From: Macrostomum lignano
Lineage: Eukaryota
Assembly (NCBI GenBank): GCA_002269645.1
Contig: NIVC01000072.1
Location: forward strand, 1-30,712
Reading direction: 5' to 3'
DNA: 30,712 nucleotides
Below are positions 18,101 through 27,100 of this stretch, piece after piece. The translations under genes and the position numbers were made by a program. Numbering within the stretch: position 1 is the stretch's first letter; each line of letters begins with the position of its first letter. Under the pieces are notes generated by a model, which saw nothing but the letters and a program-made list of their open reading frames with translations, made no database searches and had not been told where the DNA came from.

Positions 18101-21100
18101 AGCTCTCAGGAGATTTCCACTACCAGATCCCAAAAGTCCAAACAGAGAAAGAGTCTATCTCTAAAACCCTTGCTGGCAATGAAGTTAATTCCGATACTAA
18201 TTCCCGTGAAAGACCTGCTAGTCAACAGTCGAATGATAGGCAACTCACCGCAGTTGATCAGGTACCTGCCTCATTTAGTCCAAAAGAAAAAGTTGAGCAG
18301 TTAGTAGAACCAGCTGCTTTAAGAACGGATAAGCAACCGAAAGCAGATGCTGCCCTCAACGCAACTGCTAAATGTCAGCTGCCTGCATCAGACAGCACTT
18401 CTATAGATCAACTTTCAGCATCAGAATCTGCATCACCAAAAGGTCAGACGGGTCTTGCTGGCCTGCCAACTACAGACTTCAATGGTACAGAACGGCACCA
18501 GCAACCTTTGACAGGCCTCAGTGAATCAGAAAAATTATCGACTACAGGCCACGCTGGATCAGAACGACAGCCTTTAACAGGCCTCACTGGATATGAGCAA
18601 CAGCCAACTACTGGCCTCGCTGGATCAGTTCAGCAGCAGCAATCTTCGAAAAGCCCCAGTGAATCCGAACAGCTACCGACTACAGGCCTTGCTGGATCAG
18701 AGCAACAGCCAACTACAGGTCTCGCTGAATCAGAACAGCAGCCAACTACAGGCCTTGCTAGAACAAAGCAACAGCCAACTACAGGTCTCGCTGGATCAGA
18801 ACAGCAGCCAACTACAGGCCTCGCTGGATTAGAAAAACAACCAACTACAGGCCACGCTGGATCAGAGAAGCAGCCAACTACAGGCCTTACTGAATCTGAG
18901 AAACAGCCAACTACAGGCCTTGCTGGATCAGAACAGCAGCCAACTACAGGCCTCGTTGGATCAGAACAACAGCCGACTAGAAGTCTCACTGGATCTGAGC
19001 AACAGCCATCTACAGGCCTCGCTCGATCAGAACAGCAGCTAACTACAGGCCTCGCTGGATTAAAACAACAGCAAACTACAGGCCACGCTGGATCAGAAAA
19101 ACAGCAGCAGCCAACTACAGGCCACGCTGGAACAGAACAGCAGCAGCAGCAAACTACAGGCCTTGCTGGATCAGAACAACAGCAGCAGCCAACTACAGGC
19201 CTTGCTGGATCAGAACAACAGCCAACTACAGGCCTCGCTGGATTAGAAAAACAACCAACTACAGGCCACGCTGGATCAGAGAAGCAGCCAACTACAGGCC
19301 TTACTGAATCTGAGCAACAGCCAACTACAGGCCTTGCTGGATCAGAACAGCAGCCAACTACAAGCCTCGTTGGATCAGAACAACAGCCGACTAGAAGTCT
19401 CACTGGATCTGAGCAACAGCCATCTACAGGCCTCGCTGGATCAGAACAGCAGCTAACTACAGGCCTCGCTGGATTAAAACAACAGCAAACTACAGACCTT
19501 GCTGGATCAGAACAACAGCCAACTACAGGTCTCGCTGGATCAGAACAGCAGCCAACTACAGGCCTCGCTGGATCAGAGCAGCAGCCAACTACAGGCCTTG
19601 CTGGATCAGAACAACAGCCAACTACAGGCCTTACTGAATCTGAGCAACAGCCAACTACAGACCTTGCTGGATCAGAACAACAGCCAACTACAGGTCTCGC
19701 TGGATCAAAACAGCAGCCAACTACAGGCCTCGCTGGATCGGAGCAGCAGCCAATTACAGGTCTTGCTGGATCAGAACAGCAGCAGCAGCCAACTACAGGC
19801 CTTGCTGGATCAGAACAGCAGCCAACTACAGGCCTTACTGAATCTGAGCAACAGCCAACTACAGGCCTTGCTGGATCAGAACAGCAGCCAACTACAGGCC
19901 TCGCTGGATTAAAACAACAGCCAACTACAGACCTTGCTGGATCAGAACAGCAGCCAACTACAGGTCTCGCTGGATCAGAACAGCAGCCAACTACAGGCCT
20001 CGCTGGATCAGAGCAGCAGCCAATTACAGGTCTTGCTGAATCAGAACAGCAGCAGCAGCCAACTACAGGCCTTGCTGGATCAGAACAGCAGCCAACTACA
20101 GGCCTTGCTGGATCAGAACAGCAGCCAACTACAGGCCTTGCTGGATCAGAGCAAAAGCCAACTACAGACCTCGCTGAATTAGAAAAACAGCAGCAGCCAA
20201 CTGCAGGCCTCGCTGGATCAGAGCAACAGCCAACTACAGGCCACGCTGGATCAGAAAAACAGCAGCAGCCAACTACAGGCCACGCTGGAACAGAACAGCA
20301 GCCAATTACAGGTCTTACTGGATCAGAACAGCAGCCAACTACAGGCCTTGCTGGATCAGAACAACAGCCATCTACAGGCCTTGCTAGATCAGAACAGCAG
20401 CCAACTACAGGCCTCGCTGGATCAGAACGACAGCCTTCAACAGGCCTTGCTGGATCGGAGCAACGGCAGCAGCCAACTACAGGCCTTGCTGGATCAGAAC
20501 AACAGCCAACTACAGGCTTTTCTGGATCAGAACAGCAGCCAATTACAGGTCTTGCTGGATCAGAACGACAGCCTTCAAAAGGCTTCACTGGATCAGAACA
20601 GCCAAGTACAGGCCTTGCTGGATCAGAAAAGCAGCCAACTACAGGCCTTGCTGGATCAGAGCAGCAGCCAACTACAAAGCTCGCTGGATCAGAGCAACAG
20701 CAACAGCCAACTACAGGCGTCCCTGGATCGGAACAACAGCCAACTACAGGCCTTGCTGGATCAGAACAGCAGCCAATTACAGGTCTTGCTGGATCAGAAC
20801 AGCAGCAGCAGCCAACTACAGGCCTTGCTGGATCGAAACAGCAGCCAACTACAGGCCTTGCTGGATCAGAACAACAGCCAACTACAGGCCTCGCTGGATC
20901 AGAACAACAGCAGCAGCCAACTACAGGCCTTGCTGGATCAGAACAACAGCCATCTACAGGCCTTGCTAGATCAGAACAGCAGCCAACTACAGGCCTCGCT
21001 GGATCAGAACGACAGCCTTCAACAGGCCTTGCTGGATCGGAGCAACGGCAGCAGCCAACTACAGACCTTGCTGGATCAGAACAACAGCCAACTACAGGCT

Positions 21101-24100: not shown

Positions 24101-27100
24101 AACGGCAGCAGCCAACTACAGGCCTTGCTGGATCAGAACAGCAGCCAATTACAGGTCTTGCTGGATCAGAACAGCAGCAGCAGCCAACTACAGGCCTTGC
24201 TGGATCAGAACAGCAGCCAACTATAGGCGTCGCTGGATCAGAGGAACAGCAAACTACAGGCGTCGCTGGATCAGATCAGCAGCCAACTACAGGCCTCGCT
24301 GGATCAGAGGAACAGCAAACTACAGGCGTCGCTGGATCAGATCAGCAGCTAACTACAGACCTTGCTGGATCAGAACAACAGCCAACTACAGGCTTTTCTG
24401 GATTAGAACAGCAGCCAACTACAGGCGTCGCTGAATCAAAACAACAGCCAACTACAAGTCTTGCTGGATCAGAACAGCAGCAGCAGCAAACTACAAGCCT
24501 TGCTGGATCAGAGGAACAGCCAGCTACAGGCCTCGCAGGATCAGAGGAACAGCCAGCTACAGGCGTCGCTGGATCAGAACAGCAGCCAACTACAGGCCTT
24601 GCTAGATCAGAACAGCAGCCAACTTCAGGCCTTGCTGGATCAGAAAAGCAGCCAACTACAGGCCTTGCTGGATCAGAACAGCAGCAGCAGCCAACTACAG
24701 GCCTTGCTGGATCAGAACAGCAGCAGCAGCCAACTACAGGCCTTGCTGGATCAGAACAACAGCAGCAGCCAACTACAGGCCTTGCTGGATCAGAACAGCA
24801 GCCAATTACAGGTCTTGCTGGATCAGAACAGCAGCAGCAGCCAACTACAGGCCTTGCTGGATCAGAACAGCAGCCAACTAAAGGCGTCGCTGGATCAGAG
24901 GAACAGCAAGCAACAGGCGTCGCTGGATCAGATCAGCAGCTAACTATAGACCTTGCTGGATCAGAACAGCAGCTAACTACAGGCGTCGCAGGATCAGAAC
25001 AGCAGCCAACTGCAGGCCTTGCTGGATCAGAAAAACAGCAGCAGCCAACTACAGGCCTCGCTGGATCAGAACAGCAGCACCAACCTTTAATAGGCCTACC
25101 TGGATCAGCATCGATGTCAACTATAGATCCTTCTGGATCAGTGAAGCAGCCAAGTCTTTCTAAATCAAAGCATGAAGAACCAACCGTCATCTCAGTTTCT
25201 GATCATCTCCTACAAACTGGTTCTGGCCAATTGGAATTGCAGCCGTCTGATTTGGAGCTGCAGCCATCAGTGCATTCAGTTGGAGCTGAGCCAGCAATAT
25301 TGAGCGGTGATTCGGATGTTCAACAGAGAAACGATCAAAGCGTCGCAGATCCAAAGCTTTCATCGACAGCCGTACACGATCCGGTGGAACAACCTGCCTT
25401 CCCTACGCGATCTGTGGAATCTCATCAGCTGGTCGAGGAACAAGCAATCCCATGCTTTAGCGGTATCGATAAAGAGAAACCTGCAGATAGTGCTGGTGAG
25501 CCTTTCTTAAAGCATGCCAACGATTTTTCATCGGACAAGGACACATCGGGTCAAGCAGCAGATTCAACAGAACAGACTGTTGCAGAACTGAATGGCCCGG
25601 ACTTGGCTGAGGGGGTATCCAGTGGTAAACCAGCGGCGGGAAGCATCCCAGAGCTGTCTCTGGGTGCCGCGGGTCAGTCTGAACTCGCCGTCAAAGACGC
25701 GCTGCAAGTGAGCAGTCCAAATCAGGTTGGTAAAATAGTCTTTTTTGAAAAAAAAGTTGCGCAAGAGTGTCGCTGATTTTCGCTTGGCTTACGTAGTGGA
25801 CATAACTTAGGAAACAAAATTGGACCTAATATTTGAAATTTAACAGCCACTTGATTGATTAAAGTTTTTGATTGCGATTTTTACTATAAATCAGCTACCA
25901 GATCTCGTGATCACCTCAGTCACACATCCGATTATCGAGTGGACCGCACGGAGTGTGAATAATAACGAAGCTTTGATCGCTGTAGCTAAAGAACGCTTGG
26001 CCAGCAAATTATTTTTGTCATTTTTTTCTAAAACCAATGCGCGAACATACGCTAAATTTCTGGCCATAGCGAAAATACGTCTTAGGGATTGCATTGCAGC
26101 TGCTGATCAGTATTTTCTAATGCTTCTTTTACAGTTTTACCTTGCAATATTACTTGCGCAACTATTTTTGTTTTGTTGCTTTCTCAAACATAACAAATCT
26201 AACACTTTTCCTTTTTTGTTCGGCCACCCATGCAGACCTCGAGCTTCCAAACCCCTAACCAAAGCTCTAACCAACATGCTCAGCCCCAGAATGCTGGTAG
26301 TCATTTAGTCTCTGGCTTGCAGACTAAGCCTAACTCGCTCGGTCAGTCGGCTTCTCCATCAGGCCTGTCGAGCGCGGACGTGGATTTTGAGAAGCAGCAA
26401 GGCTTAGAAGAAGCTGTGGATAAGGCTTTTGATGCCATTCAGTCAGGTCGTGAACGCGTCTCTATCGAGCGCAGTCTGCCCAAGAAACATGACGACGACC
26501 CAGATTTCAATTCTCAGCAGTCCGAAGCTGATGACCACGAAATCGTGGACATCTCAGTAAGTTCAGACGCTTCGAGCGTCTGCTTTGAGGACGTCATTCA
26601 CGGTCAGCAGATTGAGCTAGACGTTTCCATGCTGGTAGAGTTAGAAGATGAAGTGGTTGAGGCTTGCACCTCTGGTGCGTCGTATGCTGAGCCAGTGCAG
26701 GCGAACAGACACGTGGTTCAGGAGGTGCCAGTGCAGCTGGCAGCGGCTGTCAGCTATCCTGTGCTGTCTAAAGCAAAGATTTCAGATCATGTTGTTCTTG
26801 AGGGCGCTGGTGTGACTAATGCCGAGCTTGGAGACAGATCAAGCCGTCCGGAGTCAGCAGACATCGATAGCTCGAAATTTATTCTGAACTCAAAAACTGC
26901 TGAACATGAAGTGTCGCCATCTACGACTACGATAAAAGAGCAGCCTTGCGATACAAGCGACTCGCTGGATCAACTAACGGATCAAGAAATGGGCAGCATT
27001 CTGCCTGGAGAGTCTCTGTTCCTTCCCTCCGAAGCTGTCAGCTCACTGCCGGTTGGTAAACGCAAGCTGCCTGACAGTCTGGAGTTCGAGCCTGATAAAG

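Follow-up and report, generated by a model that had tools for sequence, protein, structure and literature searches.

A 30,712-nucleotide stretch of the Macrostomum lignano genome (GenBank assembly GCA_002269645.1, contig NIVC01000072.1, positions 1 to 30,712 of the forward strand; hereafter, the window) carries a tandem array of 192 units of 33 or 39 bp. The host of this array is, judged from its sequence, a cytolinker gene of the plakin or spectraplakin type that encodes CH, spectrin, and plectin repeats. We consider it probable that the array is a translated, disordered spacer or tether segment of the M. lignano plakin, and its reading frame is almost certainly under selection. Plakin coding sequence flanks the array on either side in the same frame, and neither stop codons nor frameshifts interrupt it. 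Translation in at least one isoform appears very likely.

An array of 192 units in one codon phase

Tandem Repeats Finder (TRF) reported a single array at positions 18541 to 25078 (period, 33 bp; 190.9 copies; 79% matches; 6% indels), with a higher-order period of 138 bp. When the sequence is read by eye, degenerate units widen the array to approximately 18439 to 25134 (i.e., 2,232 codons), as follows.

18439..25134, + strand: tandem array of 192 anchored 33-/39-bp units, (AGSEQQ[QQ]PTTGL)n; TRF core at 18541-25078; both edges degenerate

The units were anchored on an 11-base sequence (GCTGGATCAGA; up to 3 substitutions allowed), which yielded 192 matches, all in one codon phase. Spacings between anchors are 33 bp (149 cases), 39 bp (40 cases), 30 bp (1 case), and 72 bp (1 case; i.e., 33 + 39), and none among the 192 matches departs from a multiple of 3. 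The units are therefore 11 or 13 amino acids long, plus one unit of 10 residues and none of 12 or 14, and nearly all of the length variation is a single 6-bp (QQ) step. At each position of the unit, the consensus residue is retained in 73 to 95% of the 33-bp copies. A first-pass annotation, made from the letters of the window, had described roughly 190 tandem 33-bp units staying in frame for ~6.5 kb and encoding a polymer of ~2,200 residues, and these counts agree with ours (i.e., 190.9 copies or 192 anchors, and 2,232 codons in one open reading frame [ORF]). The spacings do not bear out its range of unit lengths (about 10 to 14 residues) or the nested CAG/CAA slippage that it proposed, because the lengths change almost only by one step and are not graded.

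The array is unlikely to be an assembly artifact of identical copies, since no exact internal repeat in it exceeds 394 bp, 91% of its 200-mers are unique, and 105 of the 191 units are distinct.

The reading frame is shielded from stops and frameshifts

A single ORF spans the array (16660 to 25776 in the ORF list; open from 16576). This alone is weak proof of coding, because the consensus unit is stop free in four of the six frames. Over positions 18439 to 25134, there are no stops in frame +0, compared with 23 in frame +1, 39 in frame +2, and 6 in the open minus-strand frame. We simulated the expectation by redealing the 622 differences found between the copies and the unit consensus randomly over positions with the same starting base (1,000 trials). 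Frame +0 acquired 39.7 +/- 5.5 stops in the simulation, with a minimum of 23, versus the observed 0, while the other three consensus-open frames acquired 43.9, 32.6, and 10.2, values that the observed counts approach or fall moderately below. Since stop totals are cell counts that are inflated by block duplication, variant types were tallied as well: 61 of the 99 single-base variants of the 33-bp consensus were seen, with none of the six stop-creating types among them (hypergeometric p = 0.0025).

The anchor spacings revealed no 1- to 2-bp indels anywhere in the 6.7-kb array. The control was a 15-mer array at positions 678 to 1164, which is presumably intronic and which has three 14-bp spacings (i.e., 1-bp deletions) within 487 bp. 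With 0 stops against ~40 expected, 0 of 6 stop types, and no frameshift indels, unlike in the 15-mer array, the maintenance of the ORF in frame +0 is well supported. The contrast with the 15-mer array and the selection for frame that the first-pass annotation had drawn from it both hold. Its statement that units vary in length only by entire codons stands insofar as no spacing is off a multiple of 3. As an argument it is reduced to few events, since the independent length changes comprise a single +6-bp type and a single -3-bp event, and all other variation is duplication of units or blocks.

These data also bear on the explanation that the array is absent from the mature protein, i.e., that it is intronic or otherwise noncoding or that its exon is never included, with the open frame a by-product of a stop-free 33-bp unit. 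Three other frames are indeed consensus open (one minus-strand frame runs for 1,686 codons), 24 donor-like CAG/GT sites and numerous AG sites occur within the array, skipping of the exon would preserve the frame, and protein searches with the array and its 5' flank gave no expression evidence. However, it is only frame +0 in which the ~40 expected stops and all six stop types are missing, the 1- to 2-bp indels present in the 15-mer array do not occur here, and the array runs on continuously from Plectin-repeat coding sequence on its 5' side into 191 open codons on its 3' side that end at a consensus donor. We therefore regard a noncoding array as very improbable. Two further long ORFs were rejected as genes: one of 1,669 amino acids on the minus strand (18630 to 23639; 6 stops versus 10 expected) and one of 1,010 amino acids in frame +1 (20348 to 23380; 23 stops versus 44 expected), both of which are consensus-open frames of the repeat.

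The array lies in a predicted giant exon of a plakin gene

The array makes up 73% of a predicted giant exon that joins its neighbors in frame on both sides at candidate splice sites. The gene parts in the window are as follows (P0003 and P0005 are M. lignano proteins described below).

5324..5512, + strand: upstream exon with part of the CH domain (tblastn, P0003 residues 1-63, 100% identity)
6023..7516, + strand: exon with the CH2 end and plakin-domain spectrin repeats (P0003 residues 63-554; Pfam CH, Spectrin; PDB 4z6g [MACF1], E 1.9e-16, 2odv and 3pdy [plectin])
8592..13649, + strand: four exon blocks at 8592-9248, 9453-9746, 10005-11489, and 11850-13649 (tblastn, P0005 [UniRef100_A0A1I8FYC2])
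14213..15883, + strand: exon preceding the giant exon (P0005 residues 1362-1549 at 14210-14773; acceptor TTTCAG/G at 14212/14213; phase-0 donor CAG/GTAGGG at 15883/15884)
16594..25707, + strand: predicted giant exon of 9,114 bp (3,038 codons, 0 stops, phase 0-0; boundaries from sequence, not cDNA)
17272..17367, + strand: Plectin repeat in the giant exon, 1.1 kb 5' of the array (Pfam PF00681, E 1e-09, 38.5 bits, residues 205-236 of 16660-18459)
25135..25707, + strand: unique 3' tail of the giant exon, same frame, 191 open codons (translation)
25708..26235, + strand: predicted intron (GTGAGC donor, pyrimidine tract, CAG acceptor; GC falls to ~0.40)
26236..29352, + strand: next large open exon, ~1,039 codons, in-frame join, acidic (sequence; no Pfam domain)

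The assignment of the host follows from domain and structure matches (Pfam cutoffs: CH, 26 bits; Spectrin, 29.9 bits; Plectin, 20.5 bits). The CH2 end at 6023 to 6200 scores 21.5 bits, which is under the cutoff, and is only a half domain; CH1 is located outside or upstream of the window. The N-terminal part has PDB sequence matches to MACF1, plectin, alpha-actinin, and spectrin, and those to actin-binding domains (MACF1, plectin, and spectrin) have E values of 1.9e-16 to 1e-12. The plectin plakin-domain structures 2odv and 3pdy are matched at E values of 1e-14 and 3e-10, and the region from 6035 to 7624 has a borderline Spectrin match (29.6 bits versus the cutoff of 29.9) together with Spectrin_4. 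Plectin repeats (PF00681) score 61.7 bits in 10728 to 13721, with the best stretch of the exon blocks at ~11988 to 12074 (E = 5.9e-17), and 38.5 bits in 16660 to 18459. A representative library contains 351 plakin-repeat homologs, many of which have 10 to 46 matched repeat stretches. No spectrin rod, EF hands, or GAS2 domain, which are features of the spectraplakin subtype, were found within the window, which ends at 30712. The resemblance to MACF1 and plectin confirms that the array is embedded in a cytolinker, as had been proposed from the first reading.

Deposited M. lignano proteins support the exon map. The translation of 6035 to 7540 and the UniRef CH-domain protein P0003 (which carries PF00307) share 95% identity, and a single garbled stretch accounts for all of the mismatch. 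Another fragment, P0004, reaches only 83% identity to the window because of such locally garbled stretches. Within 6023 to 7516, these stretches are the only differences between the window and the two proteins, and they resemble frameshifts of an older assembly or a homeologous copy. The exon region from 10728 to 13721 is 100% identical to UniRef100_A0A1I8FYC2 (P0005; 1,549 amino acids). The borders of the exons mapped with P0003 and P0005 are canonical GT-AG sites (e.g., acceptor CCCAG/G at 6022/6023, donor AAG/GTAGGA at 7516/7517, and donor CAG/GTATGG at 13649/13650). P0005 omits 120 codons at 11490 to 11849 that are fully open in the window (DPIKLPR/PAATAPT) and have GT and AG at their ends; this segment could be a predicted in-frame intron (exitron) or an annotation artifact.

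For the giant exon, the phase-0 acceptor candidates are at 16594, 16672, 16690, and 16705, and the phase-0 donor candidates are CAA/GTGAGC at 25707/25708 and CAG/GTTGGT at 25725/25726. Because both ends are in phase 0, the exon could be skipped without loss of the frame and might be an optional cassette like the one known from Drosophila shot. If 16594 is the acceptor, the 5' end of the exon (16600 to 16653) consists of CAG/GGC triplet repeats, including (GCG)9.7 at 16625 to 16653. The G+C content is 55 to 66% in the 5' exons, which have GC-ending codons, and 47 to 53% from the middle of the giant exon (~17500) onward. In the array, the codons for T, P, S, and A almost all end in A or T (e.g., 342 ACT/ACA versus 3 ACC/ACG). 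In the exon at 26236 to 29352, the motif ET.VLAV(Q/R)L occurs three times, at residues 392, 663, and 939 (i.e., ~275 amino acids apart), which hints at three very diverged long repeats; a BLASTP self-comparison of this exon yielded no significant repeat.

Predicted properties of the encoded segment

The array segment of 2,232 amino acids would have a mass of 225 kDa, a pI of 4.28, and a net charge of -139. Its main residues are Q (18.9%), G (15.5%), T (15.5%), S (10.2%), E (8.9%), P (8.1%), L (7.8%), and A (7.7%). It contains no Cys, 0.6% aromatic residues, 2.1% Lys, 26% Ser+Thr, and 34% P+T+S, and has no Pfam match; neither Lys nor Arg occurs in the majority of its units. The mean normalized hydropathy is 0.386, below the Uversky boundary of 0.436 at this net charge, and so a natively unfolded chain is predicted. 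If translated, the array is very likely to be disordered, according to this prediction and an AlphaFold2 model (see below). The composition and the predictions match the disordered, mildly acidic, Thr/Ser-rich spacer that the first-pass annotation had envisaged.

We propose that the array, which follows the sequences for the CH domain, the plakin domain with its spectrin repeats, and the Plectin repeats, is probably translated within the giant exon (~16594 to 25707). The product would be a long, flexible, self-repelling tether that parts the filament-binding plakin-repeat region from the C-terminal part of the protein. In its action, such a tether might resemble a neurofilament side-arm or an entropic element of the PEVK type, while being unrelated to either.

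Alternatively, the segment might serve as a modification or cross-linking platform and not as a passive spacer, its repeated unit being a substrate for phosphorylation or O-GlcNAc addition at TT and S or for transglutaminase at Q-x-P. The Ser+Thr content (26%) and the 139 Q-x-P sites are compatible with this idea, and involucrin and SPRR proteins partner with plakins in cornified envelopes. The short Gln-rich repeats of the array are reminiscent of involucrin. In addition, the unrelated array of one plakin-repeat homolog (P0068; see below) scores against Pfam Cornifin/SPRR, in what is a low-complexity match. However, Lys at 2.1% would provide few cross-link acceptors, the motif matches are generic, and the M. 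lignano array itself has no Pfam match. We judge the platform explanation to be extremely improbable.

Growth of the array and constraint on the peptide

The internal structure of the array suggests that it may have grown via repeated in-register unequal exchange, involving the 33-bp unit, the 39-bp variant, and later blocks of ~0.5 to 1.3 kb. Shared 60-mers have lag peaks at 1263, 678, 783, 1260, and 933 bp, all of which are multiples of 3. The duplicated blocks are 94 to 96% identical, with a mixture of synonymous and nonsynonymous differences, and their dN/dS comparison involves 14 to 19 differences per pair, which are too few to decide. As the statistics on stops indicate, selection has purged stops and frameshifts but tolerates many residue changes.

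The main alternative to a selected spacer is a translated passenger, i.e., a coding minisatellite that grew neutrally in a tolerant disordered linker of a repeat-rich genome, its frame being kept open only because at least ~1,200 downstream codons must be read and its length and sequence having no function of their own. Codon position 3 holds 55% of the differences (33% in the simulation), and the synonymous share of changed codons is 50% versus the 28% expected. The four most abundant variants (73, 72, 38, and 27 copies) are all synonymous. These excesses argue against a passenger, as do the retention of the consensus residue in 73 to 95% of copies at every unit position and the recurrence of independent arrays in plakins from other phyla, a hint of a module that is tolerated or favored. 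On the other side, tandem and simple repeats constitute 15% of the M. lignano genome (PMC5730564), and the window alone contains six arrays, one other of which is coding. The nonsynonymous variant types are as common as the synonymous ones, the block duplicates carry mixed differences, and the unit sequence is not conserved in other plakins. On balance, we find a neutral passenger rather unlikely.

Several observations weigh against the spacer that we favor. The third-position and synonymous excess is driven by the four abundant synonymous variants. By type, 19 of the 27 possible synonymous and 42 of the 66 possible nonsynonymous variants were seen, i.e., about equal proportions, and the copy numbers of the two classes are alike (Mann-Whitney p = 0.28). 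For these reasons, the peptide is only weakly constrained, less so than the frame; such weak constraint at the type level fits a passenger about as well as it fits a spacer. Furthermore, the frame is kept mechanically by the duplication of 33-bp units. AlphaFold2 was run on the single sequence, as no alignment existed, and gave a pLDDT of 30 to 37 with no secondary structure for the array and of 56 to 77 with helices for the Plectin repeat, the only such segment; low pLDDT from a run of this kind is weak evidence of disorder. The composition is that of neither a PEVK segment (P+E+V+K, 20% versus ~70%) nor an elastomer (2P+G = 0.32), for which Rauscher et al. reportedly described in 2006 a proline/glycine threshold rule of 2P+G >= ~0.6. 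According to Pfam, there is no recognized domain downstream of the array within the window.

The protein record also counts against the proposed spacer. In a search of 5.8 billion proteins, 397 amino acids of the array gave two matches only, and no protein contains the array; the unique 5' flank (16660 to 18459) gave 0 matches. M. lignano transcripts are evidently missing from the searched protein collections, given that even this unique flank is without a match. Lastly, the annotated M. lignano fragments all end short of the 33-bp array. From the submitted M. lignano gene set, transcripts overlapping repeat annotations were filtered out (PMC5730564), which plausibly explains why no annotated fragment reaches the array.

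Considering both sides, we suggest only tentatively that the length or composition of the array has been selected for a spacer or spring role. The interpretation given by the first-pass annotation is, overall, partly supported.

Relatives of the unit and arrays in other plakins

The protein search with the array led only to an anonymous eukaryote-like contig and a bacterial protein. The first is a 2.95-kb metagenome contig (ENA ERZ1764464, k141_11040858) encoding a product of 234 amino acids (P0001), which is 44% identical to the array over 33% of the query (E = 4.6e-14) and contains the closest unit found. P0001 has nine 11-residue units (L001 2009-2713), and their DNA (GAGCAACAACCAATCACAGGCCTGCTCAGTACA) resembles the unit of the window; judged by eye, ~7 of 11 residues and ~24 of 33 bases agree between the two consensus units. 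No plakin context was found on the 2.95-kb contig, and the likeness of the units may reflect either homology or convergence. The second match, a bacterial helix-turn-helix protein with 11-residue units, was judged to be convergent and was rejected as a relative. In JGI metagenome contigs, 600 sites matched the pattern of the repeat, and none of them was confirmed.

Neither the array unit nor EQQPT was found in any of the best 150 plakin-repeat homologs, in agreement with the remark in the first-pass annotation that the repeat was not recognized from any plakin. Our literature search found no relevant report of a plakin, plectin, or spectraplakin from Macrostomum or other flatworms. Seven of the 150 homologs have short-period arrays of their own, with units of 8, 11, 11, 14, 18, 36, and 44 residues, as follows.

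P0039 (crabs Portunus and Scylla; source names MACF1 or unc-89): 11-aa unit SPVKGEPSPRT
P0055: 11-aa unit AAKEKQPSSTA, between plakin repeats
P0068: 8-aa unit DKDGKAPA, ~1,500 aa (residues ~1265-2750)
P0096: 36-aa unit
P0121: 18-aa unit
P0133 (spider Araneus; named "Dystonin"): 14-aa unit KSPVRDIESPKKES
P0136: 44-aa unit

Three array-bearing homologs tested by Pfam are Plectin-repeat proteins (307 to 502 bits). Like the M. lignano array, these arrays consist of lineage-specific polar or charged tandem units among or beside Plectin repeats; they differ in having KSP/SPVK-type basic-acidic units that are unrelated in sequence to the M. lignano unit. The M. lignano array (2,232 amino acids) is the longest seen, compared with ~1,500 amino acids in P0068. 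Our literature search found no paper on such short-period arrays in plakins. From the homologs compared, lineage-specific disordered tandem arrays beside plakin repeats appear to recur in invertebrates. It might even be that invertebrate plakins of several phyla, those of flatworms, crustaceans, and spiders among them, independently gained these arrays as a functional, copy-number-tunable spacer or spring module, i.e., a PEVK analog for linkers of intermediate filaments and actin of which M. lignano has the most extreme known version, although we consider this generalization doubtful.

Other repeats in the window

Five further tandem arrays were identified in the window, as follows.

14750-15121, + strand: second coding tandem array, 36 bp x 10.3, QVDP(S/A)Q(S/P)GMSTQ (TRF; 9/9 spacings of 36 bp)
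678-1164: 15-mer array, CTGGTGCTGGCGCCC x 33, 78% GC, upstream of the CH exon; open in three + frames; the 14-bp spacings are 1-bp deletions in a C run
2318-3364: noncoding array, 23-mer x 45
4208-4567: noncoding array, (CT)181
8100-8493: noncoding array, a different 23-mer x 17

P0005 stops exactly where the 36-bp array (QVDPSQSG...) begins, i.e., at its first unit. The last three noncoding arrays of the gene are in keeping with the 15% share of tandem and simple repeats in the M. lignano genome.

Implications

If expressed, the array would add an unstructured acidic chain of ~225 kDa to a cytolinker and would set the reach and compliance of a filament-junction link. Under standard polymer scaling, such a chain measures ~0.8 µm when fully extended, and the ends of the relaxed coil are a few tens of nanometers apart. 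The epidermis and the adhesive anchor cells of M. lignano depend on intermediate filaments. Expression would also reveal that large coding arrays are missing from the present M. lignano gene models, which break off at tandem repeats or are filtered for them. As a neutral passenger, by contrast, the array would cleanly illustrate the extent to which a coding minisatellite may grow when only the reading frame is policed. The unrelated arrays in crab, spider, and other plakins suggest an overlooked general feature of invertebrate spectraplakins. The main interest lies in this apparent recurrence across invertebrate plakins and in the tractability of M. lignano, for which transgenesis and RNAi are available.

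Comparison with known systems

The closest described architecture is the giant exon of Drosophila shot, an optional plakin-repeat exon of 10,497 nucleotides (PMC2173965). In Shot, as in MACF1b/VAB-10A-type isoforms and in the M. lignano gene, a CH actin-binding domain and a spectrin-repeat plakin domain are followed by a very large plakin-repeat exon. The M. lignano exon is of similar scale (~9,114 nucleotides) and, being in phase 0-0, could be optional as well. The two exons differ in content: that of Shot encodes 33 plakin repeats with gaps, while that of M. lignano encodes one clear Plectin repeat and is otherwise dominated by the low-complexity array of 11- and 13-residue units.

The PEVK region of titin is likewise a very long disordered tandem-repeat segment placed in series in a giant cytoskeletal protein, although the disorder of the M. 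lignano array is a prediction. The longest titin PEVK isoform (~2,170 amino acids) is comparable in length to the array. The two share no homology, and we rejected a PEVK classification on the basis of both composition (see above) and layout: the PEVK region is built from ~28-residue PPAK/polyE modules on separate small exons, whereas the array has 11- and 13-residue units on one 9.1-kb exon. Membership among the elastomers was rejected because of the 2P+G value given above, compared with the threshold of ~0.6.

Involucrin/SPRR proteins and mucin PTS repeats resemble the array in having short Gln-rich or Pro/Thr/Ser-rich units that are present in many copies on one large exon and that change in number via unequal exchange. 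Pfam and protein searches with the array returned no sequence match to either group. Involucrin and SPRR repeats are rich in both Gln and Lys and are cross-linked, while the array is rich in Gln only (18.9%; Lys, 2.1%). Mucins are secreted, whereas the M. lignano protein starts with cytoskeletal CH and spectrin modules (its true N terminus lies beyond the window); these modules, together with the plectin repeats and a P+T+S content of 34%, led us to reject a mucin-type PTS classification. The unit of the M. lignano array is new, and the array belongs to a known kind, of which it is an extreme case: the disordered repeat segment of a giant cytoskeletal linker.

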